Source: Macrostomum lignano | Taxonomy: Eukaryota | Length of the DNA stretch: 64,000 nt | Reading direction: 5' to 3' | Assembly: GCA_002269645.1 (NCBI GenBank) | Contig: NIVC01002079.1 | Coordinates: forward strand, 142,640-206,639 | Shown: in pieces, positions 6,541 to 50,134 of the stretch | Layout of the letters: the number at the start of each line of letters is the position of its first letter | How positions within the stretch are numbered: position 1 is the first letter of the stretch | Made by a program: the position numbers and the translations under genes | Notes under the pieces: generated by a model | Database searches by the model: none | What the model saw: the letters and a program-made list of their open reading frames with translations, nothing else | Told to the model about the DNA's origin: nothing

Positions 6541-6692
6541 GCAACCTTGGGAATCACTCAGTCATTTCTATTGGCAACACACACATGTAAGTTGCTATTG
6601 GCTGAGAGCAGTCACGTGACTACTATTCCATCCAATAGCAACTTACATGTGTGTGTTGCCAATAGAAATGGCCAGGTGAATCCCTAGGTTGC
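6541..6692. repeat. 152-bp palindrome/hairpin
   Basis: 61-bp arms with a perfect 39-bp stem (6563-6601 / 6632-6670). The loop contains AGTCACGTGACT. Confidence 0.9.
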
Positions 6693-9469: not shown

Positions 9470-10050
9470 ACTTCCATAAGTCCCCAAATTATTTCCAAAT
9501 CCCATAATTCCCCAACAAGAACAGAACAACATAAATCCCCAAATTAATCCCAAATCCCATAAATCCCCGACAACAACAGAACAACATAAATCCCCAAATT
9601 ATTCCCAAATCCCATAAATCCCCAAATGATCCCTAAATCCCATTAATCCCCGAATGACCCCCAAATCCCATTAATCCCCAAATCCCCCAAATCCTCAAAT
9701 GACCCCCAAATTTCATAAATCCCCAAATGATCCTCGGATCCCATCTACCAAAAGAGCTTCACATTCATAATCCCTAAATAATACCCACATCATCTAATCT
9801 CCCAAATGATTCCAATTCCAGAATCCCCCAAATTATCCCAATTTCATAATCCCCCAAATTATCTCAAATACCATAGTCTCCCAAATTTTCTAAATTATCC
9901 ACAAATCCGATAATCCCCAAATGATCCCCACATCCGATTATCCCCGCATCCCATGATTTCCTAAATGATCCCTAAATCCCATAATCTCACAAATTATCCA
10001 AAAATCCCATCATTTCCCTAATGATCTCCAAAATCTATAATGTCCTAAAT
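9470..10050. repeat. Degenerate AAATCCC/CCCCAAAT-rich repeat in the PTP intron
   Basis: Recurrent aaatcccataaatcccc-like units; G nearly absent on the + strand. Confidence 0.8.
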
Positions 10051-10066
10051 GATATTTACTCTGTAG

Positions 10067-11248: not shown

Positions 11249-11494
11249 CTCTCTGCCAGCTGGTCGCTTTCACTCATTTTGAACATGTATCATTTTTTCG
11301 TTGATTTATAATATCAACTCGAGGTGTGCGCGCGTCTGTGTATGACTTTTTCCTCGGATCAAAAGATACTTGCATGTTTTTCAATGTTCTGTATGATAAA
11401 TATAAGCGAAAGTAGCCATAGAAACAACTCGATAAATTTATTGATTATTATTTCAGAATTTTAAGATGTGGGGACTTTAACCTTGCCTTGTGTG

Positions 11495-11635
11495 GTTGCT
11501 ATGCGGTATTACGGTTACTATGCGGTTGCTATGCGGTTGCTATGCGGTTGCTACGCTGTTGCTATGCGGTTGCTACGCGGTTGCTACGCTGTTGCAATGC
11601 GGTTGCTATGCGGTTGCTACGCAGTTGCTATGCAA
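11495..11635. repeat. 11-bp tandem repeat (GTTGCTATGCG)
   Basis: About 12 imperfect copies. Confidence 0.9.
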
Positions 11636-11819
11636 TTAAAATCTGTAATAAAATATTCTATGGCTTGGATGATGAGCTGGAATTTTATTAGACGGTGTAC
11701 GGCAAATCTCTGATATTAATGCCTGTCTTTTCTATGGTCTAAATACAATCTCTGCTTGGAATAATCATATTTATTATTGCTGTAATTTTAATTTTAATTT
11801 CCTTTCTGGTCATCCGCAG

Positions 11820-11840
11820 TTGCCGGATCTCTCTAGCCAG
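11820..11840 (+). other. Candidate 21-nt microexon
   Basis: Pyrimidine tract tttcctttctggtcatccgcag|TTGCCGGATCTCTCTAGCCAG|gtaaat in AT-rich flanks. Confidence 0.55.
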
Positions 11841-12294
11841 GTAAATAAAAAACTCACAAATAGTATTAATTTTGTAAATAATTATAAAATCCAGCGTCTT
11901 CTTGTGTGTCAGCCTGGAGCTTTTTCATATAGTCTTGCGACTAACGACCAATCAATCAATTTCTCTGCTTGTTGATGAATCTCTGTAATAAAAATACCAG
12001 ACCACATTTTTAGTATCGCTTTTCGTAACCCTGCTTTTGTAGCCTTTTTTGTCTTGTATACAGTTTTGTTTTAATAAGCAGGATCTTTTTTTCAACTCTA
12101 GCGAAAATTTGCGTCGTACTTTCGTTTGACTTTGTGTTTTTTAATGAAGTTTGAAATTAATACCGCGCTTGAGTCTTCTGCTATCGGAATTCTGTTTATT
12201 AATCTCATTTCTCGATGAGGATACAAGTCTTGGAGCTTCATTGCTTTTAACGGTTGTAATATCCACTCTTGCTGTAAATCCTTCCTTGCATTTC

Positions 12295-12595
12295 CCCCAT
12301 CTGTCTCTTGTCTTGCATCTCCCCTCCCCTCCATCTGTCTCTTATCTTGCATCTCCCCTCCCTCCATCTGTCTCTTATCTTGCATCCCCTCCCCTCCATC
12401 TGTCTCTTATCTTGCATCCCCTCCCCTCCATCTGTCTCTTATCTTGCATCCCCTCCCCTCCATCTGTCTCTTATCTTGCATCCCCTCCCCTCCATCTGTC
12501 TCTTATCTTGCATCCCCTCCCCTCCATCTGTCTCTTATCTTGGATCTCCCTCCATCTGTCTCTTACCTTGCATCTCCCCTCCATCTCTTGTGTTG
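12295..12595. repeat. 32-bp pyrimidine-rich minisatellite
   Basis: Unit ATCTTGCATCCCCTCCCCTCCATCTGTCTCTT, about 9 copies. Confidence 0.95.
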
Positions 12596-12702
12596 CACCT
12601 CTCAGGTCGCATATAAATTGTCTTTGATCTAGAGTATTAGTGCCTACTAATAGTAGAGTGCGCGTACATGTGTCAGTCACTCGCACACACTTCAGCAGAA
12701 GC

Positions 12703-12984
12703 ATGTCTACCCCAGAAGAGGCCTCGCCGGCAGCCTTCGAAGAAGAGTCCGCAGAGCCTGACGCCGATCCAGCACAATGGACTCCAGCTGGCGCAGAAAT
12801 CCGGCGCAGAAGCAAATCGGAGCGGTTGCGCCGAACCCAGGAACAGATCGATCGGATGCGAGCCAACATGAAGAACTGGGAGGTGAAACGGTGGCGAAAG
12901 CGGTGGTCAACTAGAATCGGTATTGCTGCGGCTATGCTGCTGTTTTCCGCTGGCTGCTACTACTTGTACTTTTACTACAGGTAG
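12703..12984 (+). CDS. 93-aa tail-anchored protein resembling the C-terminal basic region and TM of TC-PTP48
   Basis: Acceptor cacacttcag| just upstream. An acidic N-part, then IRRRSKSERLRRTQEQIDRMRANMKNWEVKRWRKRW, then the hydrophobic stretch IGIAAAMLLFSAGCYYLYFYY at the extreme C-terminus. Confidence 0.75.
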   Translation: MSTPEEASPAAFEEESAEPDADPAQWTPAGAEIRRRSKSERLRRTQEQIDRMRANMKNWEVKRWRKRWSTRIGIAAAMLLFSAGCYYLYFYYR

Positions 12985-13467
12985 TTGCGCGTTCCAGTGC
13001 TGGTGCGTTGTGTCCGCCAGCTAAGTGGTAGTAGATAAAAGAGTATTCGATATTGTTGCGTACGCGATATTAAAAAAAAAAGCGCTCCTCCGTGTTGCGC
13101 AAATACCGCTGCATTGGAAACCATCTGCTGCTGCCGATATGTATTGTAGTAATTGTTATGGCCCTGAGTTTCGACACTACTTGTTTATTGATTTTTCTCT
13201 CTCTTTCTGGAGTGGCTGCTGTCTGTATTTTCTATTAATTTTTAGTGTACTGTTCTTGAAATATAATTGAGTGTAGGCCAATTAGAAACTGTTTGCTTTA
13301 GTTTTTCATGTATTGCTAGTGTTGATTTTCTATTTTGTTTTACTGCCAAGTTTACTGCTGAGAGTACGAGTATACTTTAGAAAAAAGTACTATAGAGTCT
13401 AGGATTAAATAGAGACTCAATGGAAATATGACTGTAGAAGATCCATTCTGTCCATTCTAGAAGCCAA

Positions 13468-13760
13468 GGAGAATCCCAGTAGGAACTCGAGGGAATCCTA
13501 GGAAAAACCCGATGAGAATCCCAGTAGAAACTCGAGGGAATCCTAGGAAAAACCCGAGGAGAATCCCAGTAGGAACTCGAGGGAATCCTAGGAAAAACCC
13601 GAGGAGAATCCCAGTAGGAACTCGAGGGAATCCTAGGAAAAACCCGAGGAGAATCCCAGTAGGAACTCGAGGGAATCCTAGGAAAAACCCGAGGAGAATC
13701 CCAGTAGGAACTCAACGGAATCCTAGGAAAAACCCGAGGAGAATCCCAGTTGAAAACCGA
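13468..13760. repeat. 45-bp minisatellite
   Basis: Unit GAGAATCCCAGTAGGAACTCGAGGGAATCCTAGGAAAAACCCGAG, about 6 copies. Confidence 0.95.
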
Positions 13761-13851
13761 GGAAAATCCCAGTGAGAACTCGAAGGAATCCTATGTGAAA
13801 CCCGAGGAGAATCCCAGAGGGAATCCTAAGAGAATCCCAGAAGGAATCCTA

Positions 13852-14712
13852 AGAGAATCCCAGGGGCAACCCGTGGAGAATCCCAGGGGCAACCCGTGGA
13901 GAATCCCAGGGGCAACCCGTGGAGAATCCCAGGGGCAACCCGTGGAGAATCCCAGGGGCAACCCGTGGAGAATCCCAGGGGCAACCCGTGGAGAATCCCA
14001 GGGGCAACCCGTGGAGAATCCCAGGGGCAACCCGTGGAGAATCCCAGGGGCAACCCGTGGAGAATCCCAGGGGCAACCCGTGGAGAATCCCAGGGGCAAC
14101 CCGTGGAGAATCCCAGGGGCAACCCGTGGAGAATCCCAGGGGCAACCCGTGGAGAATCCCAGGGGCAACCCGTGGAGAATCCCAGGGGCAACCCGTGGAG
14201 AATCCCAGGGGCAACCCGTGGAGAATCCCAGGGGCAACCCGTGGAGAATCCCAGGGGCAACCCGTGGAGAATCCCAGGGGCAACCCGTGGAGAATCCAGG
14301 GGCAACCCGTGGAGAATCCCAGGGGCAACCCGTGGAGAATCCCAGGGGCAACCCGTGGAGAATCCCAGGGGCAACCCGTGGAGAATCCCAGGGGCAACCC
14401 GTGGAGAATCCCAGGGGCAACCCGTGGAGAATCCCAGGGGCAACCCGTGGAGAATCCCAGGGGCAACCCGTGGAGAATCCCAGGGGCAACCCGTGGAGAA
14501 TCCCAGGGGCAACCCGTGGTGAATCCCAGGGGCAACCCGTGGAGAATCCCAGGGGCAACCCGTGGAGAATCCCAGGGGCAACCCGTGGAGAATCCCAGGG
14601 GCAACCCGTGGAGAATCCCAGGGGCAACCCGTTGAGAATCCCAGGGGCAACCCGTGGAGAATCCCAGGGGCAACCCGTGGAGAATCCCAGGGGCAACCCG
14701 TGGAGAATCCCA
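13852..14712. repeat. 23-bp minisatellite
   Basis: Unit GAGAATCCCAGGGGCAACCCGTG, about 37 near-identical copies. Confidence 0.97.
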
Positions 14713-15038
14713 GGTGGAACCCAGGAAGAAACCCAAGGCGAATCCCTGTAGAACCCAAATAGAATCCCAGTGAGAACTCAAGGAGAATCCTAGTTGTAAC
14801 TCTACGGAATACCAGGGGAAATTCGAGGAGAATCCCAAGGAAAGCCAGAGGAGATTTCATGGGAACCCGGGGAAAATCCCAGTGGAATCCAAAGTGCATT
14901 CAAAGGAAACCGGAGAAAATGCAAGGAAATCCGCCGATAGTCTTAAGCGCAATTCTAGGAAATCCGAGAAAAATCTCAGGGGTATCCGGGGGTGACCTAT
15001 AATATGATCCCTGAGTTCCTGTCCCCTATTGCTGCGCC

Positions 15039-15542
15039 ATGTCCTCAGCACTGAAGGTGGCCGTAGTGACCGGCTCCAACAAGGGCATCGGGTTCGCCAT
15101 TGTGGAACACCTCTGCAAGCAGCTGGGCTCCAGCTGGGCCGTCTATGTGACCTCGCGCGATGAAGCTCGCGGCGCCGATGCTCTGAGCCAGTTGAAGCAG
15201 CGCGGAGTCGAGCCGCGATTTCACCAGCTGGACATCGACAGTCAGGAGAGCGTGGACCGCCTCGCCGCCTACCTTAAAGGCACCTACGGAGGCCTCGACA
15301 TTCTCGTTAACAATGCTGGCATTGCCTATAAGGGCGACTCGACCGCGCCGTTCGCCGAGCAAGCAGAGGTCACCATAGCAACCAACTTTTGGAGCACTCT
15401 GCGTATCTGTGATGCGCTGTTCCCTCTGCTGAGGCCGCACGCTCGGGTTGTGCACCTGTGCAGCAGCGTTAGCGATATGGCACTCAACAAGGCTTCTCCG
15501 GAGTTGCAGAAGAAGCTCACGCAGCCCATGAGTCTGGATGAG
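15039..15542 (+). CDS. CBR1: Carbonyl reductase (SDR family) copy 1, exon 1
   Basis: TGSNKGIG Rossmann motif, FHQLDID and LVNNAG. Donor GAG|GTAAGT, phase 0. Confidence 0.95.
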
Positions 15543-15599
15543 GTAAGTGCTGTCTTTGAAGTGATGTGCAACGCTTTACTTTACCTTTGGACTTTAAAA

Positions 15600-15980
15600 T
15601 AGACATAACCAATCTTATAGGCTGCAGACAGTGTTTACCCTAGACGTAACCAATCCTGTAGGCTGCGGACAGTGTTTACCATAGACATAACCAAAGCTGT
15701 AGGCTCCGGACAGTGTTTACCATAGACAACCAATCTTATAGGCTGCGGACAGTGTTTACCATAGACATAACCAATCTTATAGGCTGCAGGCAGTGTTTAC
15801 CATAGACGTAACCAATCTTATAGGCTGCAGACAGTGTTTACCCTAGACGTAACCAAAGCTGTAGGCTGCGGACAGTGTTTACCATAGACATAACCAAAGC
15901 TGTAGGCTCCGTACAGTGTTTACCATAGACATAACCAATCTTATAGGCTGCGGACAGTGTTTACCATAGACATAACCAAA
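15600..15980. repeat. 41-bp minisatellite in the CBR copy 1 intron
   Basis: Unit CATAGACATAACCAATCTTATAGGCTGCGGACAGTGTTTAC, about 9 copies. Confidence 0.95.
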
Positions 15981-21005: not shown

Positions 21006-21529
21006 TGCTGCTATGTAGGAGCGGTAGCTCTGGTCGGTATGCCTGGCTCTGGTACTGGCCGAGGGACAGATGGTTTGAATAGAGAAGAGCGTCTTAAAAT
21101 CCGCTCCTTTGGCCTCTTGGCCGTGCCATTTTTCTCAAATTAAAGAGGGCAAGGAGTTTAAGGTTGCTACGCGTATTGTGTGCTGCGCTGCACAGCTAGA
21201 ACCCTTCGCCATCTCTCTCTCTCTCTCTCTTGCTCCTCACCCTTCCACCTGTCTCTCTGCTTATAGCACATTCTACTGCAGTGCTCTTTACTCCATCGCG
21301 ATTCCCCGTGGCCATGGTTTCACCCTCAATAAAGTGGCCGTTGTGCGATGCGGTCTTCCGCTCTTACCCCCCCCCTTCCAGTGCCCCTCTCTGGCACAGG
21401 CCAGTTTACTCTTAAGCTTTTTATACGTCGTATAGCTCGTACATATGGCTTAGCGCTTGACTTTTCTTAGTTGTCATTGGCTTACACTTGACTTCCAATA
21501 TCAATTGCATATATAATACAACCAGCTTG

Positions 21530-22770
21530 GACTCCCCGTGAAACCATGCTTGGATTCCCCGTGAAACCATGCTTGAATTCCTCGTGAAACCATGCTTGAA
21601 TTCCCCGTGAAACCATGCTTGAATTCCCCGTAAAACCATGCTTGAATTCCCCGTGAAACCATGCTTAAATTCCCCGTGAAACCATGCTTGAATTCCCCGT
21701 GAAACCATGCTTGAATTCCCCGTGAAACCATGCTTGAATTCCCCGTGAAACCATGCTTGAATTCCTCGTGAAACCATGCTTGAATTCCCCGTGAAACCAT
21801 GCTTGAATTCCCCGTGAAACCATGCTTAAATTCCCCGTGAAACCATGCTTGAATTCCCCGTGAAACCATGCTTAAATTCCCCGTGAAACCATGCTTGAAT
21901 TCCCCGTGAAACCATGCTTAAATTCCCCGTGAAACCATGCTTGAATTCCCCGTGAAACCATGCTTGAATTCCCCGTGAAACCATGCTTGAATTCCCCGTA
22001 AAACCATGCTTGAATTCCCCGTGAAACCATGCTTGAATTCCCCGTAAAACCATGCTTGAATTCCCCGTGAAACCATGCTTAAATTCCCCGTGAAACCATG
22101 CTTGAATTCCCCGTGAAACCATGCTTGAATTCCCCGTGAAACCATGCTTGAATTCCCCGTGAAACCATGCTTGAATTCCCCGTAAAACCATGCTTGAATT
22201 CCCCGTGAAACCATGCTTGAATTCCCCGTAAAACCATGCTTGAATTCCCCGTGAAACCATGCTTAAATTCCCCGTGAAACCATGCTTGAATTCCCCGTGT
22301 AGCCGGCCTGAATTTCTTGTGAAATCAACTTGAATTTCCCATGAAACCATGCTTAAATTCCCCGTGAAACCATGACTGAATTCCCCATAAAACTGACTGA
22401 ATTCCCCATAAAACTATAACTTAATTCCCCATAAAACCATGACTGAATTCCCCGTGAAGCCGGCTCGAATTTCTTGTGAAATCAACTTTAATTCCCCATG
22501 AAACCAGCTTGAATTCCCCATAAAACCATAACTGAATTCCCCGTGAAACGATGACTGAATTCCCCGTGAGACCATGACTGAATTCCCCGTAAAACCATGA
22601 CTGAATTCCCCGTAAAACCATGACTGAATTCTCCGTGAGACCATAACTGAATTCCCCGTAAAACCATGACTGAATTCCCCGTGAGACCATGACTGAATTC
22701 CCCGTAAAACCATGACTGAATTCCCCGTGAAACCATGACTGAATTCCCCGTAAAACCATAACTGAATTCC
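21530..22770. repeat. 23-bp minisatellite between the divergent calmodulin-like and AF10 genes
   Basis: CCCCGTGAAACCATGCTTGAATT, switching to ...ATGACTGAATT after about 22370. Confidence 0.97.
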
Positions 22771-24885: not shown

Positions 24886-24924
24886 GTTGGTTAAAGACAG
24901 GGACAATCGACTTTGTAAAACAGT

Positions 24925-25560
24925 AGTCCACAACATCTATAGATGTCCCTGATCAGCAGTCCACAGCATCTATAGATGTCCCTGATCAGCAGTCCACAGC
25001 ATCTATAGATGTCCCTGATCAGTAGTCCACAACATCTATAGATGTCCCTGATCAGCAGTCCACAGCATCTATAGATGTCCCTGATCAGCAGTCCACAGCA
25101 TCTATAGATGTCCCTGATCAGCAGTCCACAACATCTATAGATGTCCCTGATCAGCAGTCCACAGCATCTATAGATGTCCCTGATCAGCAGTCCACAGCAT
25201 CTATAGATGTCCCTGATCGGCAGTGCACGGCTTCTATAGATGTCCCTGATCGGCAGTCCACAGCATCTATAGATGTCCCTGATCAGCAGTCCACAGCATC
25301 TATAGATGTCCCTGATCAGCAGTCCACAGCATCTATAGATGTCCCTGATCAGCAGTCCACAGCATCTATAGATGTCCCTGATCAGCAGTCCACAGCATCT
25401 ATAGATGTCCCTGATCAGCAGTCCACAGCATCTATAGATGTCCCTGATCAGCAGTCCACAGCATCTATAGATGTCCCTGATCAGCAGTCCACAGCATCTA
25501 TAGATGTCCCTGATCAGCAGTCCACAGCATCTATAGATGTCCCTGATCAGCAGTCCACAG
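24925..25560. repeat. 33-bp minisatellite, AF10 intron 2
   Basis: Unit GTCCACAGCATCTATAGATGTCCCTGATCAGCA, about 19 copies. Confidence 0.97.
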
Positions 25561-25594
25561 CTCGCTCAATCTTCATGCTTTGCTGCCCCGCCAG

Positions 25595-27055: not shown

Positions 27056-28059
27056 CCACCCACAGCAGCAGTTGCTCAGAGCAGTAGTATGACGTGTGTT
27101 TTGTAATTGAAACTCTGTTGTGCTTATAAAATCGCTTATATTATAATTAATTAGCACAGCGCATTAATAGTTTCAAACTAATTGTGGAAATTTAAGATTT
27201 ATTGATTGGGGATGGCGGTAGGCGCGTGCGCTGTAAAATATTGAACCAGCTTTTTACTTCAAATTTAATCTTTTTGTGTTCCCCGCATTGCCTGAGTGTG
27301 TCTCTGTTTTCAATGGTTTATTTAGTTAGTATCATTAGTTTGCTGTGAGTTCGTGTTACACAGTTTTCCTTACCACGAGTGTTTAATCAGTTTATTGGTC
27401 TGTTTAATTCACACAATTTATTTAGCACTATTATCCATTTTGGTTTTGCGCTTCTATTTTGTAATTAATTTTTTATTTCTAAATGATCAACCAGCGACTC
27501 TGTGTTGCTGTATAGTAACATTACTGTGTAAATAGTAATATTAGTAACTTTTATTTAATATAACTGCTGCCGGCTTCTCAACAATTGTTGATGAATTCAT
27601 GAATGACTTTAATAAATTGTCCAGTCAAATGTGCGCGTTTATTTGTGCTTATTATGACTTTTAAGCATGCACAAGCAATACATACTACTTAGGCGAAACA
27701 GTTTGCAAGTAGTCAGATTGGCATATGTTTATTTACACAGAAATTGTTTTTAATAAACTTCAAGCCACACAGGTGATATTCATAACGCTATCAGTTACAA
27801 TATGAAATATGGAATAAAATTAATGTGAAATATTAATGAAAACAATGAGAAAGAAACGCACTGGGGATGAGATATGTAAGCGCAGCGCATTTAGAATGTG
27901 ACAAAATGAGTTCGTTTTGAGATTACTAAACGCACGCCTAATATAAGCCTAATATAAGTCTTTGAATTTTGAAAGCTGCTGAAATCTTGTACTAAACATT
28001 TTAAACTGTTCGGCAACCAATGGCATAGCGAACAAATAGGTAGATATACATGTAGAAGC

Positions 28060-28490
28060 CAGCTGGCATAGCAACCAATGAGTATCATAGAAACCAGTTG
28101 GCATAGCAACCAATGAGTATCATAGAAACCTGTTGGCATAGCAACCAATGAGTATCATAGAAACCTGTTGGCATAGCAACCAATGAGTATCATAGAAACC
28201 TGTTGGCATAGCAACCAATGAGTATCATAGAAACCTGTTGGCATAGCAACCAATGAGTATCATAGAAGCCAGTTGGCATAGCAACCAATGAGTATCATAG
28301 AAACCAGTTGGCATAGCAACCAATGAGTATCATAGAAGCCTGTTGGCATAGCAACCAATGAGTATCATAGAAGCCAGTTGGCATAGCAACCAATGAGTAT
28401 CATAGACACCAGTTAGCATAGCAACCAGTGGGTATTATAGAAATCAGTTGGCAAAGCAACCAATGAGTATCATAGAAGCCAGCTGGCATA
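28060..28490. repeat. 35-bp minisatellite
   Basis: Unit TTGGCATAGCAACCAATGAGTATCATAGAAACCTG, about 12 copies. Confidence 0.95.
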
Positions 28491-28534
28491 GCAACAAGAA
28501 ACCCAGTACGCGTGAAGTGCACCGCCTCTTCATC

Positions 28535-29913
28535 TCACCTGTGCGCTACCAGTTGGGGGTGGAAATTTCCCCCAGAGGCGGCAGCGGCGGCGGCTGCGGC
28601 AGCGGCGGCAGCAGCGGCTGCTCCGCCACCCTGCGCCTGCGAGCAGGTGGCCATGTGCTGCGGCCAGTGCCTCTGCTGGCACTTGGCGTCGCAGTAGGAC
28701 GTGTTCCAGCAGCAGTAAAAGAACGCCTCCTTGCTGCAGAACGCGCACCACTGTTTCCGCTTCACCTCCTCCAGCTGGCGTCTCGAGTCGGTCTCGAACG
28801 CCTGGCAGGCGGCGCTCAGCACGTTCTGTTTCTCGATGTCAAAGGCGGCCCGCAGCTCGCACATGGCCAGGCGGTGGTTGTGCTCTAGCTCGCTGGCCTG
28901 CAGCTGGTGCAGGAACTGCAGGCGGGCCATCTCGGCCGCGTGCTGGCGCCGCTGCACAATCAGCTTCTGGCTAAGTTGGCTGGCTGACTGCCTCGCCTGC
29001 GAGTCTGCGACTGCTGCCACCTGCTGCGGCTTCCGCTCGGCCAGGTAAGACTCCACCGCGGCGGCGAATGTCTTGATGGCGTCGGCTTTCACCGCCTCCA
29101 GCCAGATGGCCGCTGTCTCCTTGCAGACTGCAGGCTGACTGGAGCTCGGCCGGCCGCCAGGAGCTCGCAGCAACTCGGCCGCCCGGTCCAGCAGGCGGCG
29201 ATTCTCTTCAATGACGTCGGCTGCCTCGCCGCCCGCCCGCTGCAGCCGGTGGTGGCAGAGCAGGCGCAGGTCAGCCAGGAAGGCGGCCTCGGTGGCGAAG
29301 CCTCTGCTGGCGGCCTTCCTGCGCAGCGCCGACAGACTGGACGGACAGTCGGCGTCCTCGCCGTCCTCCAGCAGGTCCGCCCGGTTGTCGACTTCCCCGG
29401 CCAGCGAGTCCGCGACCGCCGTCAAAGTGTCGCTCAGGCGATCCAGCCTTCTCCGCGTCTCCTCCGGGCTGTCCGCCTCGCCCAGTTGAGCGGCCTCGGA
29501 CTCCAGCAGAGCCTCGCACTCCGGACAGGCTGTCCGGCGGCGGTCCGGCCAGCACGGGCGATGGTAGTGCCGGGGACAGGCCGGGCACTGGACACCGTCG
29601 GACACTGCCTGGCAGCAGCGGAAACAAAGCGGCTTCTCCGCCTCCTCGGCTGCCATTTCACCGTTAATCATCAGCCGGGGTCGTTTGGCCGTCGGTGTCG
29701 GCGACTGAGGCGTGTTTCTCCCGTCGTCCGGGTCGTCCGCGAGCAGCAGAGCCGCCCGCCTCGGCGGCGCTTTCCTGCTGGCCCGCCGGCGGCCAATCGG
29801 CGGCTCAGCCGCGGCCTCCGCTGACTGTGCAGTCGCCTCCTCGTCTCGGTTCCCTTCGTGATCTCCCTGATTTGAAGCTTTGGGCTCATCCTCAGTCGGA
29901 TCGCGGTTAGGAT
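28535..29913 (-). CDS. ZMYND8: ZMYND8/RACK7-like protein, long terminal exon (PHD, degenerate bromodomain, coiled coil, MYND)
   Basis: MYND finger KRKQWCAFCSKEAFFYCCWNTSYCDAKCQQRHWPQHMATC, C4HC3 PHD finger and the bromo-like AFLADL. The frame stays open upstream of the ORF-track start to acceptor aatctcccag| at 29914 (phase 1). The first exon was not securely located. Confidence 0.85.
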
Positions 29914-29964
29914 CTGGGAGATTTTTTTAAAGAATTGGGAGCTTGCAATACGTGCCGACCTATT

Positions 29965-30500
29965 GGGATTCCCTAAGATCGATTGGGATTCCCTCAGATC
30001 GATTGGGATTCCCTCAGATCAATTAGGATTCCCTCAGATCGATTGGGATTCCCTCAGATCGATTGGGATTCCCTCAGATCGATTGGGATTCCCTCAGATC
30101 GATTGGGATTCCCTCAGATCGATTGGGATTCCCTCAGATCAATTAGGATTCCCTCAGATCGATTGGGATTCCCTCAGATCAATTAGGATTCCCTCAGATC
30201 AATTAGGATTCCCTCAGATCAATTGGGATTCCCTCAGATCGATTGGGATTCCCTCAGATCGTTTGGGATTTCCTAATTTATCGGGATTCGCCAAGGTCTA
30301 TTGGGGTTCCCTCAGATTGATTGGGATTCCCTCAGATCGACTGGGATTCCCTCAGATCGATTGGGATTCCCTCAGATCGATTGGGATTCCCTCAGATCAA
30401 TTGGGATTCCCTCAGATCGATTGGGATTCCCTCAGATCAATTGGGATTCCCTCACATCAATTGGGATTCCGTCACATCAATTGGGGTTCCCTCAGATTTA
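29965..30500. repeat. 20-bp minisatellite in the ZMYND8-like intron
   Basis: Unit GATTGGGATTCCCTCAGATC, in two blocks. Confidence 0.95.
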
Positions 30501-30764
30501 TTGGGATTCTCTGATCTATCGGGATTCGCCAAGGTCTATTGAGATTCTGATTCGGGTCTATTGTGCTTCCCTTAGATCTTTAGAGATTAGCATGAAGTCT
30601 AATTCCCTCAGGTTTCTAGTTAATGAGGCTACAAGAGGACACGAAATGCTGCACATCGGCCCTGCCGGCCCACACACACTGTTGCTTACTCTCTAGTCTG
30701 AGACAACTGCCCGGTCCTCTGTCTTCTCTCCCCCTCTCCGTCCTTGCATCTCCATCCCCCTTCG

Positions 30765-31140: not shown

Positions 31141-31339
31141 TGCCCCCACAGTCTCCACCGAACAATGGGGCTCCCGAGAATTGAGAGAGGTGGATAGAGG
31201 GTTGGGATGTACCTGACGGAGCTTATCCACACTTAGACTGTTGAATTAGATTATTAAGCTTAGGCGCTAATTTTTTAATTAGAGACTCGTGACGCCGCGC
31301 GCAGGCACAGTGCAGTGCAGAAGTTGAACGAAAGAAGAG

Positions 31340-33868
31340 AGATGCAAGCGATAAGGGAGAGAGACAAGCGATAAGGGAGAGAGACAAGCGATAAGGAAAA
31401 GAGACAAGCGATAAGGGAGAGGGACAAGCGATAAGGGAGAGGGACAAGCGATAAGGGAGAGGGAAAAGCGATAAGGGAGAGGGACAAGCGATAAGGAAAA
31501 GAGACAAGCGATAAGGGAGAGAGACAAGCGATAAGGAAGAGGGTCAGAGGGACAAGCGATAAGGAAAAGAGACAAGCGATAAGGGAGAGGGACAAGCGAT
31601 AAGGGAGAGGGAAAAGCGATAAGGGAGAGGGACAAGCGATAAGGAAAAGAGACAAGCGATAAGGGAGAGAGACAAGCGATAAGGGAGAGGGTCAGAGGGA
31701 CAAGCGATAAGGAAAAGAGACAAGCGATAAGGGAGACGGACAAGCAATAAGGGAGAGAGACAAGCGATAAGGGAGAGGGTCAGAGGGACAAGCGATAAGG
31801 AAAAGAGACAAGCGATAAGGGAGAGAGACAAGCGATAAGGGAGAGGGTCAGAGGGACAAGCGATAAGGAAAAGAGACAAGCGATAAGGAAAAGAGACAAG
31901 CGATAAGGGAGAGAGACAAGCGATAAGGGAGAGGGTCAGAGGGACAAGCGATAAAGGAGAGGGACAAGCGATAAGGAAAAGAGACAAGCGATAAGGGAGA
32001 GGGTCAGAGGGACAAGCGATAAGGAAAAGAGACAAGCGATAAGGGAGAGGGACAAGCGATAAGGAAAAGAGACAAGCGATAAGGGAGAGGGACAAGCGAT
32101 AAGGAAAAGAGACAAGCGATAAGGGAGAGGGTCAGAGGGACAAGCGATAAGGAAAAGAGACAAGCGATAAAGGAGAGGGACAAGCGATAAGGAAAAGAGA
32201 CAAGCGATAAGGGAGAGGGTCAGAGGGACAAGCGATAAGGAAAAGAGACAAGCGATAAGGGAGAGGGTCAGAGGGACAAGCGATAAGGAAAAGAGACAAG
32301 CGATAAAGGAGAGGGACAAGCGATAAGGAAAAGAGACAAGCGATAAGGGAGAGGGTCAGAGGGACAAGCGATAAGGAAAAGAGACAAGCGATAAGGGAGA
32401 GGGACAAGCGATAAGGAAAAGAGACAAGCGATAAGGGAGAGGGAAAAGCGATAAGGGAGAGAGACAAGCGATAAGGGAGAGGGTCAGAGGGACAAGCGAT
32501 AAGGAAAAGAGACAAGCGATAAAGGAGAGGGACAAGCGATAAGGAAAAGAGACAAGCGATAAGGGAGAGGGTCAGAGGGACAAGCGATAAGGAAAAGAGA
32601 CAAGCGATAAGGGAGAGGGACAAGCGATAAGGAAAAGAGACAAGCGATAAGGGAGAGGGAAAAGCGATAAGGGAGAGAGACAAGCGATAAGGGAGAGAGA
32701 CAAGCGATAAGGGAGAGGGTCAGAGGGACAAGCGATAAGGAAAAGAGACAAGCGATAAAGGAGAGGGACAAGCGATAAGGAAAAGAGACAAGCGATAAGG
32801 GAGAGGGTCAGAGGGACAAGCGATAAGGAAAATAGACAAGCGATAAGGGAGAGGGACAAGCGATAAGGAAAAGAGACAAGCGATAAGGGAGACGGACAAG
32901 CGATAAAGGAGAGGGACAAGCGATAAGGGAGAGAGACAAGCGATAAGGGAGAGGGACAAGCGATAAGGGAGAGGGACAAGCGATAAGGGAGAGGGACAAG
33001 CGATAAGGGAGAGAGACAAGCGATAAGGAAAAGAGACAAGCGATAAGGGAGACGGACAAGCGATAAAGGAGAGGGACAAGCGATAAGGGAGAGAGACAAG
33101 CGATAAGGGAGAGAGACAAGCGATAAGGGAGAGAGACAAGCGATAAGGGAGAGGGACAAGCGATAAGGGAGAGGGACAAGCGATAAGGGAGAGAGACAAG
33201 CGATAAGGAAAAGAGACAAGCGATAAGGGAGACGGACAAGCGATAAAGGAGAGGGACAAGCGATAAGGAAAAGAGACAAGCGATAAGGGAGAGAGACAAG
33301 CGATAAGGGAGACGGACAAGCGATAAAGGAGAGGGACAAGCGATAAGGAAAAGAGACAAGCGATAAGGGAGAGGGACAAGCGATAAGGGAGAGGGACAAG
33401 CGATAAGGGAGAGAGACAAGCGATAAGGAAAAGAGACAAGCGATAAGGGAGACGGACAAGCGATAAAGGAGAGGGACAAGCGATAAGGGAGAGAGACAAG
33501 CGATAAGGGAGAGAGACAAGCGATAAGGGAGAGACAAGCGATAAGGGAGAGGGACAAGCGATAAGGGAGAGGGACAAGCGATAAGGGAGAGAGACAAGCG
33601 ATAAGGAAAAGAGACAAGCGATAAGGGAGACGGACAAGCGATAAAGGAGAGGGACAAGCGATAAGGAAGAGAGACAATCGATAAGGGAGAGAGACAAGCG
33701 ATAAAGGAGAGGGACAAGCGATAAGGAAAAGAGACAAGCGATAAGGGAGAGGGTCAGAGGGACAAGCGATAAGGGAGAGAGACAAGCGATAAGGGAGAGG
33801 GTCAGAGGGACAAGCGATAAGGAAAAGAGACAAGCGATAAGGGAGAGGGACAAGCGATAAGGGAGAGG
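31340..33868. repeat. 2.5-kb purine-strand 20-bp minisatellite with a 29-bp variant
   Basis: Constant core GACAAGCGATAA with variable GA-rich flanks (GGGAGAGG, GGAAAAGA, and an inserted GTCAGAGG). Confidence 0.97.
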
Positions 33869-34738: not shown

Positions 34739-35954
34739 ATTTCGCAAATTTCACAAAACTTCAAAACTTCAAATTTCACTCACTATCGGAGTCCATCCTA
34801 TCCAGCAGCTGGTTCTGTTGCCTGTCCTGTCTGTGATGCAGAGGCGGAGGCTGGGTGGCCACAGCCGCCATTCGGTATTGAGTCGGGTTTAAAAGCGAGC
34901 TTTTTTAAAAAAGGCTTTCTTAAAAGCAACAATTCTCAGCGTCGTAAAACTACTGAGCAGAGAGCTCAAACAAGGCTCAAAGCCAGCCCGATTCTGTCTG
35001 TTTGCGTTGTCTCTTTGCGGGCCCGCACTCTAATGCTCTCCGAGAGTCAAATCTGCCAAGCTTGTGGCCAAGTTTAATAAACTCGTGAGGGGGGGCGCGT
35101 TTGTTGACAGGCTCGGTGTGGGGGGTGACGCGAAGGACCCGCCGGGCTCACAACACAACAATTCAGCAATATGCGAGTCGAGAGAGAGAGAGAGAGAGAG
35201 GTTTGAGTCTTGAGCCGTCCAGGCCAGAGCAAGGCTGGGGAGCTCATGCAGGTTGGCCGGCCAGCTATAAACTGACAGTAAAGAGGGCGGAGGTTGGCGC
35301 GCAACGCCGCAGCCAACCAGCAGAGGCTGAGCTCCGCCCAGCACCCTCTTGGCGGACTATCTGGCTGCCCTGGCAACAGGTAAACACTCGGACTGGTTGC
35401 CACTGGCAACTCTGGGAGTAGGTGGGGGTTGCTGCTGTGGGCGGGGTGAGGGGCTGGCTGGGGCTTGTTCTTGCATTGCCTCTAAATAGTCTCTCTTTCT
35501 TTCTTCCCCTTCTTTTAGAAGCGTATTTCACCTGAGTAGCGCGAAGCCACGCCCGTTCATGGCCCAGTGCTGTCTGCCCCCCCCACCCTCTGCCCCCTCT
35601 GGAACGGCAGCTGCTGCGCACATCTAGCTGGTGATGGCTTTTATTTCTCTTGCTGAAGCTGCTCAACTCATGCAGAGTCGGAGAGAAGAGATGACGCAGC
35701 TAAATGGGCAGGTTTTTGTTCGTTTCTATTTTTCTCCAATGTGATGTAACTGCAGCCTAGGCAGCCGAGGGTGCGTGTGGCTTGTTGCTATGGAAACCGG
35801 ATTAACACCAACCCCTCTTATAGCTACGATGGCTGCAGAGGTATTGAGGGACATGAGGGCCTCTGTTTAGCTGGGGTGACTCAGCGCGTCTTTTGCATTT
35901 GGAAGCCTTCCCGCCTTGTTGCTGAGAGACATGCAGTCAAACTGCTTTGATCAA

Positions 35955-36836
<882 letters not shown>

Positions 36837-37477
36837 TTAAGATTTATAATGTGAAATCTTTAATCTCAATGCTGTGCTCCTTTATGCCAAAATTGCAATT
36901 TCACTCAATTTATTACTTTATCTGCTACCTTCAGAAATTCGGAAATAAAAGCGTGGAAACTATTTTATTCGCTATTAACTATTCCATATACTCGTATTTT
37001 CTTATATTTCTACTGCAAGTAGACTCGTGCGAGTAAGCGCGCGCTGATGTTTTCCTACCGGAGCAGCAGTCGGGCCTGAATATCAATATCAGTTGAACCC
37101 TCTTGCCCGCCTGCAAGAGTCTAGAAGCGGACTTAACAGACCGCTTATCAATAGGGAAGGGAAAGATGCTGCCTCACTAATCCAAGAAACTGCACCCCTC
37201 CCCCCGATTAACTCACTATCCCCGGTCTGGCAGGCAGAATGCCTTCAGCAGCTTAAAACTAGTTCTGCTCGCGCATGCCTCCTGTGAAACAGATGGCGCA
37301 GATTTCATTAAACCAACTGAAACTTTATAGCGGGTATTTAGTTAGGGCCTCGAGTACTTCAGCTCAACACTTCCGACTTCGAACTACGCGTCACACAAGA
37401 GTGCGCTCTACGGATCTGAATAGAGTGGGGACTTAAGGAAAGCAAGGTTTTATTTTGTCATGAAACCCATTTGAAAG

Positions 37478-38675
37478 GGGCGCCATGAGGAGTGTCGCAG
37501 GGGGCGCCATGAGGAGTGTCGCAGGGGGCGCATTGAGGAGTGTCGCGGGGGGCGCATTGAGGAGTGTCGCGGGGGGCGCATTGAGGAGTGTCGCGGGGGG
37601 CGCATTGAGGAGTGTCGGTGCGCATTGAGGAGTGTCGCAGGGGGCGCATTGAGGAGTGTCGGTGCGCATTGAGGAGTGTCGGTGCGCATTGAGGAGTGTC
37701 GGTGCGCATTGAGGAGTGTCGGTGCGCATTGAGGAGTGTCGGTGCGCATTGAGGAGTGTCGCAGGGGGCGCATTGAGGAGTGTCGGTGCGCATTGAGGAG
37801 TGTCGCAGGGGGCGCATTGAGGAGTGTCGGTGCGCATTGAGGAGTGTCGCAGGGGGCGCATTGAGGAGTGTCGGTGCGCATTGAGGAGTGTCGCAGGGGG
37901 CGCATTGAGGAGTGTCGGTGCGCATTGAGGAGTGTCGCAGGGGGCGCATTGAGGAGTGTCGCAGGGTGCGCATTGAGGAGTGTCGCAGGGGGCGCATTGA
38001 GGAGTGTCGCAGGGGGCGCATTGAGGAGTGTCGGTGCGCATTGAGGAGTGTCGGTGCGCATTGAGGAGTGTCGCAGGGGGTGCATTGAGGAGTGTCGGTG
38101 CGCATTGAGGAGTGTCGCAGGGGGCGCATTGAGGAGTGTCGGTGCGCATTGAGGAGTGTCGGTGCGCATTGAGGAGTGTCGCAGGGGGTGCATTGAGGAG
38201 TGTCGGTGCGCATTGAGGAGTGTCGCAGGGGGCGCATTGAGGAGTGTCGGTGCGCATTGAGGAGTGTCGCAGGGGGCGCATTGAGGAGTGTCGCAGGGTG
38301 CGCATTGAGGAGTGTCGCAGGGGGCGCATTGAGGAGTGTCGGTGCGCATTGAGGAGTGTCGGTGCGCATTGAGGAGTGTCGCAGGGGGGCGCATTGAGGA
38401 GTGTCGGTGCGCATTGAGGAGTGTCGGTGCGCATTGAGGAGTGTCGCAGGGGGCGCATTGAGGAGTGTCGCAGGGGGCGCATTGAGGAGTGTCGGTGCGC
38501 ATTGAGGAGTGTCGGTGCGCATTGAGGAGTGTCGGTGCGCATTGAGGAGTGTCGGTGCGCATTGAGGAGTGTCGGTGCGCATTGAGGAGTGTCGGTGCGC
38601 ATTGAGGAGTGTCGGTGCGCATTGAGGAGTGTCGGTGCGCATTGAGGAGTGTCGGTGCGCATTGAGGAGTGTCGG
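37478..38675. repeat. Interspersed 20-bp and 24-bp minisatellite
   Basis: GCATTGAGGAGTGTCGGTGC and GCATTGAGGAGTGTCGCAGGGGGC units mixed. Confidence 0.97.
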
Positions 38676-41670: not shown

Positions 41671-42529
41671 CTATTAGGGCCAATACTGTACACGGGCACA
41701 GCACTCGTACACACACACACACGCTCACACAGGGTGTACAGCAGCCCTGACTTTCTAATCGTCCGGCATGTACACTGTCTGTGCCTGGGGCTTTGGCATC
41801 GGTGCTTTAAAATTTTCTTTGAGTTGATTGATTTGTGCGCAAACCAAAAAATGCACTCAACTCAGAGCCAAAAATATGTAGAGCTCTGATGAAGGCCTCA
41901 CTGCTGCCCGCTACGGCTGATGAAAACCTCAGATTGCTGCTTTTTTGTCTTCAATTTCAACTGCAGAGCCCTGCGAGCGCTAGGGATGGCCTATGGGGAG
42001 ATTTATCCCTCGCTGCCCATAATGGACTGTAATGAGCATAACAGGATCTCCCTGATTGCGTGACGGCAGAAAGGAGACGACGGCGGGAGAAGGGACGGCC
42101 AGACTTCAGCAGTCGCCTAATCGAGGTTTTAGAAGAGATGGGAGATAGCCAGGCTCAGGGGGGGGGTCAATTAATTTGCTCGCCTGGGATCAGGCGGGGA
42201 AGGGAGAATAGCGGCCGGGGGTAACCGGAGGAGGGAGGCAGGGGAAGCCAGAGCAGTCCGAGAAGCTAAACTGGGAGAAAAATCCTCATTTCAAACGAAC
42301 ACTGGCCGTGTTTTATTTCGCCGCTTTTCTGAACGACAAAGAGAAAGGCGCGTTAAATTTTAAATCTTTGCCGCGGCACGGGAATTCCAGGGACTCGGCC
42401 GGTGCCTTGAAAAAAAGGGATCTTATTGGGATGACGAAAGCGTTATTGATTGTGAGATGGGACGAGTCAGGTGGTCGTTGCAGTAAGAAAATTGGCTTTT
42501 ATTGCATCCGAGGGTACAGATAAAAGCCC

Positions 42530-43605
42530 CAACACTGTCACCCCAACACTGTCACCCCAACACTGTCACCCCAACACTGTCACCCCAACACTGTCACCCC
42601 AACACTGTCACCCCAACACTGTCACCCCAACACTGTCACCCCAACACTGTCACCCCAACACTGTCACCCCAACACTGTCACCCCAACACTGTCACCCCAA
42701 CACTGTCACCCCAACACTGTCACCCCAACACTGTCACCCCAACACTGTCACCCCAACACTGTCACCCCAACACTGTCACCCCAACACTGTCACCCCAACA
42801 CTGTCACCCCAACACTGTCACCCCAACACTGTCACCCCAACACTGTCACCCCAACACTGTCACCCCAACACTGTCACCCCAACACTGTCACCCCAACACT
42901 GTCACCCCAACACTGTCACCCCAACACTGTCACCCCAACACTGTCACCCCAACACTGTCACCCCAACACTGTCACCCCAACACTGTCACCCCAACACTGT
43001 CACCCCAACACCGTCACCCCAACACTGTCACCCCAACACTGTCACCCCAACACCGTCACCCCAACACCGTCACCCCAACACCGTCACCCCAACACTGTCA
43101 CCCCAACACTGTCACCCCAACACTGTCACCCCAACACTGTCACCCCAACACTGTCACTCCAACACTGTCACCCCAACACTGTCACCCCAACACTGTCACC
43201 CCAACACTGTCACCCCAACACTGTCACCCCAACACCGTCACCCCAACACCGTCACCCCAACACTGTCACCCCAACACTGTCACCCCAACACTGTCACCCC
43301 AACACTGTCACCCCAACACTGTCACCCCAACACTGTCACCCCAACACTGTCACCCCAACACTGTCACCCCAACACTGTCACCCCAACACTGTCACCCCAA
43401 CACTGTCACCCCAACACTGTCACCCCAACACCGTCACCCCAACACCGTCACCCCAACACCGTCACCCCAACACTGTCACCCCAACACTGTCACCCCAACA
43501 CTGTCAACCCAACACTGTCACCCCAACACTGTCACCCCAACACTGTCACCCCAACACTGTCACCCCAACACTGTCAACCCAACACTGTCACCCCAACACT
43601 GTCAC
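42530..43605. repeat. 14-bp minisatellite (CCCCAACACTGTCA), JPH intron 1
   Basis: About 77 copies. Confidence 0.98.
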
Positions 43606-45574
43606 CCGAGAACCCACTGCCAAGTGTGCAACCCATTGAACTCCGCTACAAGCAAGCACCGGCTATGCAGAGGCAGTTGTTGAGCTGGAGCGCTGTCAAT
43701 GCAAAAAATCGATATCCAGTCCATTACGCCAGGCAAACAAAGCCTCGCAACAAAAGCTTCATAACGCAAACTCATTGATTAACACTTGATTAACACCAGC
43801 GCACCAGCTCGCTATGAAATATTTGCCCCTCTAATTTTACAGTCCACAATGCGAGCAGATTCGATTTAAACTTAAAAAAACTGCATCGCATCGCATGCTA
43901 TCGATAAGTGCGAGCTTAGTTATTCAGGTTAATGCGTGCTGCTGTTGCTATGGCAAGTGCTGCAAGCATGGGATAAAGTATGTATGCTTGGTCACTGGGG
44001 GAAGGGGGAAGGGAGAAGGAATCGAGGCGGGAGAGCAGTGCAGCTCTTCAATCCTGTTTTATTAACCACACAGCGGAACTGAATCAGCGGGCTCGGCTAT
44101 GGAAGGAGCGGCTGAAGCCGAGCTCACCGTCAATTAGCAGGCGGTCTTGAGAGCAAAGAAAGACAAGGATAGACAGAGATAGGAGAGATGCGGCAAAGGA
44201 GGCTGCAGAAGGGAGGGAAGAGATTTTGCTTCCCAATTTTATCCTGGGGGACGGACAGGCAGGCATGCTATGGAGGTGTTTGGCTGAGCACCGGGCTCTG
44301 ATGCAGATGAGGGACGCATGCTGTAGTGACGCCATCACATTTGAGACGCATTAAATATTGTCGCGTTCTGAAAAGAGCGGAGAAGAGCACTGCAATTATA
44401 AGAATTGAGAAAGCCGAGAGATGCTGACAGCCCAAATTTGGCAATCAGCGATAAAATTGGGCTGAGGAAAATTGATGTGGAACAGCTGTGATTTCGGCCG
44501 CCCATGTTGCTCGACGTTTTTTTCGGCGGCCTCGGGCTGGAGCCCTGGTTATCTGAGATGTTGTTTTGAAAGGGGCGAGAGGACGGGATTGATAAAAGAC
44601 GGAGAGTAGGGTGCGACACAGAGCCGCTTTCAGTTGCTTTGCATTCGGAAGAGAAGCAGAAGTGAGAGGTCGGGAATTTAGGAAATGCGAGTAGGAGAGG
44701 CAGGTCGGACGAGAGCTTGCCGGGAAAGTGTGAAGCACTGCTAAAGGAAACTTGGAGAGTTGCTAGGGGGGATATTGGAAAGCAGAGGGCAAAAGAAGGC
44801 GTGCAGATCTGTGGCACGAAATTCAAACCAAAAAGATATCCAAGGATCTTTCTGACCGACCGAGTTTTTAGCTTTCCTGGGCGGACTAAAGGTGACTGCG
44901 CCTGTCTCAGGGAATGCACTTTTGGATATTCGCCCGCAGCCCTAAGTTTTTGTGCGGCAGTTTTTGGGAAACCAACCGAATAGCGCTACCCGTTTCTAAG
45001 ACTGTTCGGCAGTCTGACACTGGGGGAAAGATATGAGACAGAATCCCCTGAAGTTTCATCAATAATTTTAGCTATATATAGTTTCTCGCAAAAATCTTGT
45101 CGAGTCGCCGTCTTGCCACCGCAGCCGACCCTGTGCGCTCTCTGGCCTGCTCTGCTATCGACAGTCACCAAGCTGGTGGTCTAATTAAATTCCTGGACTC
45201 TGGCTACTAGACTTCCTAGTGTACTCAAAAAGGTTCCCAGGGGAGTCTGCAGTCTCCCTGTCTCGCTGAGTGACAAAGCTTCATACTTTTGCTGCTGCTG
45301 CAGCCTCCCAGAGATCATACCGTCTTGCGGTGAAATTGGAAAAATTCTCCCCCACACAGTGGGGCCACCTTTGGAGCCAACATGCGTTCGATGCTTGGAC
45401 AAAATGAGGAATATAAATAATAGACAAGATAGTGTGGGGTTGGTCTTTTTCTCTCGCTATTCTGCGAATCTCATAAAGCTTCTCTGACCCGGGTACTTCC
45501 AGCTTGCTTGCAACCAGCAAACTGTCGAATTCTTTTTATAGTCATTTTTTGCAACTCAATTTGCGTTACTTGCA

Positions 45575-49597: not shown

Positions 49598-50134
49598 GTG
49601 AGAACGATTGAAAAAGTTGGAATTGATTTTGTACTTTTTTTGCTTCCGTTTCCAAGCCCGCTTTCTTTGTCTTTTTGAAAATTAAAAAAAGGGTCTAACT
49701 TTTATGTTTGCTGTAAGGCGGAAGTTAGAGTCGTATGTTTGATTCGTATGAGCAGCCCCTCGGTACAGGAAAAATGAATCGGTATAAATATTTTTCCACC
49801 GAAGAAAATAAACAAAAAATTTATCGCCTATACTGTAAGGCCTAAAACTGTCAACTTAGTCGTAAAAGTGCAAAAATTGGCATATACGCTCGTAGCTACA
49901 AATTCATGGAAGCAGGGAATAAATGAAAGAGCTGCGAGTGCGTGCCGCCGACCACCAAAAACGTCTTGATTTAAGGAGCATTCTGACTGCAGAATTTTAA
50001 AGCCAGTGGGGTTTCGGTACTTCTTTAGCTTAGCCGCTATTTTGTCTGTAATTATTTCCGGCTGTCTCTGTCAATGGAAAGATTTATTATTTTTTTGGAG
50101 GGACTTTGAAATTGTTGAGTATCTTTCAGGCTCC

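Follow-up and report, generated by a model that had tools for sequence, protein, structure and literature searches.

The stretch of DNA analyzed here is a 64-kb window of Macrostomum lignano, and the element under study is a ZMYND8-like gene on its minus strand. From 29911 to 28538 the main frame of this gene runs for 458 codons without a stop, while each of the other five frames of the same interval contains 4-10 stops, and shuffling the interval 20,000 times gave a frame open over this full length just once. A TAA at 29926-29924 shuts the main frame on the upstream side. The first ATG lies at 29671 and predicts a 378-amino-acid (aa) product ending at a TGA stop at 28537-28535; on the evidence of the open frame, the shuffles and the codon usage, the interval 28535..29671 (minus strand, ATG to TGA) was taken as the conservative coding sequence, and all amino acid positions given below are numbered from this ATG. 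A second ATG, at codon 6, has a better Kozak context (gaaATGg) than the first. A codon-usage model trained on other M. lignano genes favoured the main frame in every segment. The codon bias peaked in the reader part, at the bromodomain remnant (0.43 bit/codon; GC content at third codon positions, GC3, 86%), and the segments across the gene had GC3 values of 86-90%. An earlier note on this DNA had described one continuous exon running from a PHD finger through a bromodomain remnant and a coiled coil to a MYND finger, and the 458 open codons bear this out on the minus strand, which the note had not given. The end coordinate proposed there, 29913, adjoins an acceptor-like AG and would be a plausible exon start. 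The window gene is an intact, lineage-specific ZMYND8 duplicate in M. lignano, contained in one large exon.

In the C-terminal half of the product, a ZMYND8-type coiled coil (aa 243-307; 28751..28945, minus strand) matched Pfam PF23460 (ZMYND8_CC) over its whole length (1-65/65, E 3e-18), and a MYND zinc finger (aa 309-343; 28643..28747, minus strand) matched PF24324 (MYND_ZMYND11_ZMYD8, E 4e-13); both matches exceeded the curated Pfam cut-offs. The coiled coil leads directly into a ZMYND8/ZMYND11-type MYND finger, which is the arrangement by which the ZMYND8 family is recognized, and among PDB sequences the crystal chains 9wv4 and 5mq4 of the human ZMYND8 coiled coil and MYND finger (CC-MYND) matched this half at E ~2e-32. 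All of the eight MYND zinc ligands are identical to those of the human protein (C1028, C1031, C1039, C1040, C1046, C1050, H1058 and C1062). In human ZMYND8, mutagenesis and isothermal titration calorimetry revealed that mutation of F1037, W1041, Q1051 and W1055 abolished binding of the PPPL-phi motif of GATAD2A (PMC13196413, JBC 2026), and these four residues have identical counterparts in F318, W322, Q332 and W336 of the window protein. Thus, the MYND finger is as intact and highly conserved as had been claimed. The dimer-interface residues Q307 and N323 (human Q1026 and N1042) are kept as well, and most of the MYND dimer-interface residues are retained; human K1024 is replaced by Arg.

In the N-terminal half, Pfam detected no PHD finger, bromodomain or PWWP within the open reading frame (ORF). 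For aa 20-148, a phmmer search of the PDB retrieved ZMYND8 PHD-BRD-PWWP chains exclusively (BRD, bromodomain; E 0.002-0.01), and a ZMYND8 reader profile built from 61 canonical reader cassettes matched the ORF at E 1.8e-10 over profile positions 17-174, an interval that spans the PHD finger and, up to and including helix B, the bromodomain. The later parts of this profile (helix C, zinc knuckle and PWWP) went unmatched in all six frames of the 64-kb window. The domain scan that the earlier note had called for is therefore divided between two tools, with ZMYND8_CC and MYND found by Pfam and the PHD finger and bromodomain through helix B found by the ZMYND8 profile, and the absence of a PWWP that it had claimed holds for both tools, in the ORF and in six frames of the window. 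The window protein likewise lacks the bromo-PWWP zinc knuckle, as well as a long central region.

Alignment with 19 canonical cassettes, together with the ZMYND8 profile match, places a PHD-type finger at aa 16-52 (29516..29626, minus strand). Its eight zinc ligands (C4HC3) are all present with suitable spacing and its CPR..H motif is kept; at the positions where ZMYND8 PHD fingers have near-invariant D, W, H and W, the window protein carries K13, F17, C20 and T47. This loss of near-invariant non-ligand residues had been missed in the earlier note, as had a third, shorter paralog. The bromodomain remnant (aa 66-170; 29162..29476, minus strand) has helices Z, A, B and C and gives no Pfam Bromodomain match. 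Its ZA loop is shortened and acidic; the PF, PV and PDY residues are deleted or replaced, and PMDL has become PSSL. When aligned with ZMYND8 cassettes, the position of the docking Asn is occupied by a GCG codon encoding Ala146 (29234..29236, minus strand), the Tyr/Phe position before it by Arg145, and the helix-B Asn position by His141. The phmmer alignment reproduced the pairing of LCHHRLQRAGG with ILHNCIIYNGG on which the idea of a broken acetyl-lysine pocket had been based, with the docking Asn changed to Ala146 and the preceding Tyr to Arg. In BRD4, mutation of the docking Asn to Ala abolishes acetyl-lysine binding (PMC3326523), and in the window protein the preceding Tyr, the helix-B Asn and the PF/PDY residues of the ZA loop are gone as well. 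Among 101 highly conserved cassette columns, 23 are kept in the window protein, compared with 62 in a full-length paralog from the same genome, and 55 are absent from the window protein. An AlphaFold2 (AF2) model of aa 1-190 built with a multiple sequence alignment (MSA) contained a PHD finger and four helices at a predicted local distance difference test (pLDDT) value of 80, with a poorly defined ZA loop, and its top fold matches were ZMYND8 PHD-BRD-PWWP cassette structures; a single-sequence AF2 model of the 378-aa protein was uninformative (pLDDT 49). The PHD-bromodomain part persists only as a scaffold, in which the zinc ligands and four helices are kept and the mark-reading residues are gone.

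An exhaustive search of representative proteins showed that the closest relatives of the window protein are all from M. lignano, and this search identified the full-length ZMYND8 of the species, PAA77361.1 (BOX15_Mlig003609g3), which has 921 aa and 6 exons, together with a second copy, PAA88507.1. The full-length paralog has a Pfam Bromodomain match (1e-16) with an intact CIVYNG motif and a PWWP match (4.7e-5) whose 24.2 bits are slightly below the Pfam cut-off of 25.6 bits. This search of the genome thus agrees with the earlier description of the window gene as a paralog, since a full-length ZMYND8 with a bromodomain and a PWWP match is found in the same genome. The short paralog, PAA81575.1 (BOX15_Mlig017092g1; UniProt A0A1I8ITZ6), has 310 aa and 3 exons and consists of a basic N-terminus, a pre-coiled-coil helix, the coiled coil and the MYND finger, with no PHD finger, bromodomain or PWWP. 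A word-indexed protein search, run with or without the poly-Ala tail, returned only this short paralog and a few CC-MYND fragments, and no ortholog of the window gene turned up in the databases searched.

In a neighbor-joining (NJ) tree with 24 other ZMYND8 homologs, the three M. lignano genes formed one clade inside ZMYND8 in 100 of 100 bootstraps, and the window gene paired with the full-length gene in 84 of 100. Over CC-MYND, the full-length paralog shows 72% amino acid and 75% nucleotide identity to the window gene. The two also have similar tails: that of the window gene (28538..28621, minus strand) comprises a 15-residue poly-Ala run, then SGGNFHPQLVAHR and the stop, and that of the full-length paralog comprises poly-Ala and, at its end, AHYRQLIGR and the stop, with an H..QL..R motif in common. 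They differ in that the window gene is one exon encoding 378 aa, while the full-length gene has 6 exons encoding 921 aa, and only the latter gives a Pfam Bromodomain match and a PWWP match. The short paralog shows 67% amino acid identity to the window gene and shares with it the pre-coiled-coil helix, the coiled coil and the MYND finger; unlike the window gene, it keeps an intron before the CC-MYND exon and lacks any trace of a PHD finger or bromodomain. The helix before the coiled coil, TAAIWLEAVKADAIKTFAAAVESYLAE (29036..29116, minus strand), is common to both paralogs and is weakly present in arthropod ZMYND8. The window gene has a GC3 of 94% over CC-MYND, against 87% for the short paralog and 66% for the full-length one; these differences distort synonymous distances and hint at different recombination or expression regimes. 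The evidence on the branching order of the three paralogs is divided: the tree and the tail favour the full-length gene as the closest relative, while weak N-terminal similarity and high GC3 link the window gene to the short paralog. No synteny was found between the window locus and the two paralog loci, which have only repeat families in common with it. The short paralog lies at 10001-13419 of the locus L001 (from NIVC01000522.1), and its intron 2 contains a long (TATC)n tract like that at 35957-36837 of the window. A retroelement ORF with reverse transcriptase, RNase H and integrase is located 5-7 kb upstream of it.

Selective constraints were evaluated by pairwise comparison with the paralogs. 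Over CC-MYND (102 codons), the comparison with the full-length paralog gave dN 0.16-0.17 and dS 0.8-1.3, corresponding to a dN/dS ratio (omega) of 0.14-0.19, and the comparison with the short paralog gave an omega of 0.42-0.46. For the PHD finger against the full-length paralog, dN was 0.6, dS ~1.5 and omega ~0.4, and for the bromodomain remnant dN was ~1.0 with dS saturated, so that omega is not estimable. In a relative-rate test of CC-MYND with eight outgroups, 3-7 changes were unique to the window gene and 5-8 to the full-length gene, a difference that is not significant. In the consensus columns of the reader part, 31 changes were unique to the window gene and 9 to the full-length paralog (chi-square 12.1). 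Divergence in the reader part is about fivefold that in CC-MYND, and most of the change has occurred on the branch of the window gene. CC-MYND is under purifying selection and is not accelerated. The earlier note had held that a neutral dN/dS combined with a lack of expression would speak against its proposal; with no stop in 458 codons and an omega of 0.14-0.19 over CC-MYND, neither neutral evolution of the conserved domains nor disabling changes were found. Dating of the duplications from dS was considered and rejected, given GC3 values of 94, 87 and 66% among the copies and a saturated dS in the reader part.

The exon structure of the full-length gene allows the window exon to be decomposed. 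In that gene, the N-terminal region and the PHD finger come from exon 2, as does the bromodomain as far as VYNGSQ; helix C and the PWWP are specified by exon 3, and exon 6 runs from the pre-coiled-coil helix to the stop. The window exon corresponds to exon 2, the helix C part of exon 3 and exon 6 joined without introns, with the PWWP and exons 4-5 absent. Two parental introns are gone, namely the bromodomain intron (after parent Q366) and the intron before the CC-MYND exon; a 5' intron, kept or newly acquired, may be indicated by the acceptor-like site at 29914. The hint of a retrogene origin given in the earlier note thus gains from the absence of two parental introns, but the exon has neither the N-terminal start of the parent nor about 300 of its residues (the PWWP together with exons 4-5), so that it is not colinear with the parental mRNA, and its flanks, which enter minisatellites within 40-50 nt, show no sign of a poly(A) remnant or a target-site duplication. 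Such marks would be erased anyway, because dS is ~1. A retrogene, possibly 5'-truncated and later internally deleted, fits these data weakly. A copy made at the DNA level would fit no less well if it had undergone a single deletion and lost one or two introns, and these few steps suffice because the PHD finger and most of the bromodomain, as well as CC-MYND and the tail, are already single exons in the parent. In addition, large exons are common in M. lignano; the neighbouring phosphatase gene has an exon of 393 codons, and the splice-junction and gene counts published for this species (PMC8629364) imply ~2.6 cis-splice junctions per gene.

The gene's 5' end is less sharply defined than its 3' end. 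An acceptor-like AG (tctcccAG/at; 29914..29915, minus strand), located 9 nt downstream of the in-frame TAA, is a candidate 5' exon boundary, CAG being the cis-acceptor motif of M. lignano (PMC8629364). Between it and the first ATG lies an in-frame extension of 80 codons without an ATG (29672..29911, minus strand), which is both basic and acidic and contains a KRPR motif. The main frame is favoured here too but more weakly (0.14 bit/codon, GC3 70%). Against the N-terminus of the short paralog, the extension reached a Smith-Waterman score of 55, compared with 36 +/- 6 in shuffles (4 of 500 reached it), whereas its two remaining frames gave no signal, and neither did a comparison with the N-terminus of the full-length paralog. 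This extension is either coding, by way of an upstream exon, or formerly coding and now 5' untranslated region. A scan for an upstream first exon (ATG ... GT[AG]AG, phase 1, up to 37.4 kb) yielded only a weak candidate at 34871..34784. At the other end of the gene, a donor-like AG/GTGAG overlaps the stop codon; it is probably not used, because the tail motif and the stop position match those of the full-length paralog. A conservative gene model therefore runs from the ATG at 29671, or from the better-context ATG five codons on, through to the stop.

An Arg-rich upstream ORF of 72 codons (29671-29889, minus strand) ends in a TGA that overlaps the main ATG (cTGATGa). The spliced leader of M. lignano terminates in an ATG (PMC8629364), and this leader ATG was considered as the start codon; when joined at the AG at 29915-29914, it sets the frame of the 72-codon upstream ORF rather than the main frame and was therefore rejected as the main start codon. 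The presence of the upstream ORF in the frame of the leader ATG could be due to chance or could be a translational control feature.

The gene is flanked on both sides by repeats, with a 35-bp minisatellite at 28053..28495 that begins 40 nt past the stop codon and a 20-bp minisatellite at 29962..30527 that begins 47 nt upstream of the acceptor-like site. Across the 64-kb window, ~25 different minisatellite arrays can be distinguished, whose repeat units measure 14-45 bp; they lie, for example, at 7607-8779, 13468-14722, 21520-22770, 24921-25561, 31337-33867, 37486-38674 and 42527-43607, and many of them give rise to long spurious ORFs on both strands, which make up most of the listed ORFs of at least 150 aa. 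The array at 31337-33867 extends for 2.5 kb with a 20-bp purine-rich unit, GAGAGAGACAAGCGATAAGG, and strand asymmetry is extreme in the 32-34 kb bin (GC skew 0.56, AT skew 0.75). A 16-bp minisatellite at 50133-50462, ACCCCTAACCCCCGCT, has a telomere-like core, CCCTAA, at an internal position. Repeat families at 51482-51911 and 6532-6703 show 88-90% identity to other M. lignano contigs; matching repeats occur at 1726-2194 and 21826-22596 of the short-paralog locus (L001) and at 15457-15619 of the full-length-gene locus (L002), and one common repeat family sits in intron 5 of the full-length ZMYND8 gene. On the plus strand, 10067-11248 is the 393-codon exon of a PTPN1/PTPN2-like tyrosine phosphatase (Pfam Y_phosphatase, 1.6e-54); its whole length aligns at 99% identity with UniProt A0A1I8G638 of M. 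lignano, and this match, together with the shared repeat families, assigns the window to that species. An Rfam scan of the window gave zero matches.

Among known proteins, human ZMYND8 (PRKCBP1/RACK7; structures 4cos, 5b73 and 5y1z for PHD-BRD-PWWP, 5mq4 and 9wv4 for CC-MYND) has the same domain order of PHD finger, bromodomain, coiled coil and MYND finger. It exceeds 1,000 aa, whereas the window gene encodes 378-458 aa, and unlike it the window protein has no PWWP, zinc knuckle or central region and shows the Asn-to-Ala and Tyr-to-Arg changes and the loss of PF/PDY. ZMYND11/BS69 belongs to the sister family, which has a PHD-BRD-PWWP cassette and a MYND finger, and it has the Pfam domain MYND_ZMYND11_ZMYD8 in common with the window protein. 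Its similarity is confined to the MYND finger (E ~4e-12, against 2e-32 for ZMYND8), and PDB sequence searches with the N-terminal half returned ZMYND8 chains and never ZMYND11. The bromodomain of MLL is atypical in that its docking Asn is replaced by Asp (PMC3326523). The window protein resembles such atypical bromodomains in that the acetyl-lysine anchor is replaced and the helical bundle kept. It differs from the atypical human bromodomains in that its Ala is no hydrogen-bond donor and the ZA-loop and helix-B hallmarks are lost, which amounts to a broader degeneration.

With moderate confidence, we favour the explanation that the window gene is a functional ZMYND8 paralog that keeps dimerisation and the binding of PPPL-phi partners without histone reading of the ZMYND8 type. 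On this explanation, the window protein would still dimerise, possibly with full-length ZMYND8, and would remain able to engage partners with PPPL-phi motifs, for example NuRD through its GATAD2/p66 subunit or proteins of the ZNF687 type, and it would be unable to dock on H3K14ac-type chromatin as ZMYND8 does. Because dimerisation and PPPL-phi binding would be retained and chromatin docking lost, the protein may serve as an adaptor uncoupled from chromatin, act as a decoy or modulate full-length ZMYND8. That it could compete with NuRD recruitment or redirect it, as the earlier note had suggested, is a reasonable supposition, and heterodimerisation with the full-length protein would be an equally good mechanism. 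Several points weigh against this explanation. Partner binding and dimerisation are deduced from residue conservation only, and human Y1048, an auxiliary contact in the docking model, is Ala in the window protein; this position is non-aromatic in both other M. lignano paralogs too. The MSA behind the AF2 model consists of canonical ZMYND8 sequences, which biases the model to the canonical fold. Pairwise dN/dS cannot separate two lineages, with dS near saturation, and constraint on the reader remnant was judged from the M. lignano paralogs. Finally, a homologous-looking N-terminal extension has no start codon and the context of the ATG at 29671 is weak, and the 378-aa ORF is absent from both of the M. 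lignano protein sets searched, and a look-up of the exact product found no record.

The last two of these points would also be expected of a decaying or silent duplicate, with little or no expression, in which the reader half drifts neutrally and the frame stays open through GC richness and a CC-MYND that has not yet decayed. The dN of ~1.0 in the bromodomain remnant, which resembles the dS of CC-MYND, agrees with such drift, as do the lack of annotation in either protein set, the extension without an ATG and the minisatellites that tightly box in the gene. However, the 458 codons contain neither stop nor frameshift in an interval whose other frames have 4-10 stops and which remained open in 1 of 20,000 shuffles, CC-MYND has an omega of 0.14-0.19 and is unaccelerated relative to the full-length gene despite a dS of ~1, the PHD and MYND fingers between them retain 16 of 16 zinc ligands, and in-frame codon bias is at its strongest within the bromodomain remnant. 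We therefore regard decay as unlikely. Similarly doubtful is the possibility that the reader has changed rather than been lost, the PHD-bromodomain scaffold being retained for another ligand, either a different histone state or a protein partner, in the manner of the human cassette with drebrin. The eight of eight PHD ligands, the four bromodomain helices kept at ~27-33% identity to the paralog and the high in-frame codon bias of the reader part are what this possibility predicts; the human cassette has been solved with the drebrin ADF-H domain (5y1z), and positive selection would also yield fast, one-sided change. On the other hand, a single sequence is too few to detect positive selection at individual sites, the ZA loop is shortened and of low confidence in the model, and the third paralog has dropped the cassette entirely, which indicates that the cassette is dispensable for at least one derived function.

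The stripped appearance of the gene would be an artefact if the exon were part of a larger gene whose other exons supply a PWWP or other domains. The acceptor-like AG at 29915-29914 with the in-frame extension lacking an ATG, the donor-like GTGAG overlapping the stop codon and the weak candidate first exon at 34871..34784 are features that such a gene would have. Nevertheless, none of the frames of the 64 kb contained anything that the ZMYND8 profile matched as helix C, zinc knuckle or PWWP; the PWWP of ZMYND8 sits between the bromodomain and the coiled coil, where the window gene has a continuous ORF with ~15 linker residues; and the stop position and tail motif agree with those of the full-length paralog. 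This scenario is highly improbable.

The explanation that we favour, a functional paralog without ZMYND8-type reading, could be extended to all three genes. M. lignano would then have a graded ZMYND8 series, comprising a full reader, a scaffold-only reader and a CC-MYND-only form, whose truncated members heterodimerise with the full-length protein or titrate away partners with PPPL-phi motifs, NuRD p66 among them, and in this way regulate NuRD targeting as built-in dominant negatives, for instance in neoblasts or in the germline. We offer this extension as a speculation and think it rather improbable. In the literature, we found no paper on ZMYND8 in Macrostomum or on the three locus tags, and searches for ZMYND8 with planarian, Schmidtea, Schistosoma or flatworm gave no ZMYND8-containing paper among the top results.

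The window gene is a modest lineage-specific variant of a gene family and not a new kind of system. If it is expressed, it would be a natural separation-of-function allele of ZMYND8, in which partner binding and dimerisation are kept and histone reading is removed; otherwise, it would be an unremarkable example of a duplicate that has lost domains, in a genome whose hidden polyploidy and abundance of duplicates are known. Because RNAi and transgenesis can both be applied in M. lignano, its three paralogs could be used to part chromatin reading from MYND recruitment in a regenerating animal.

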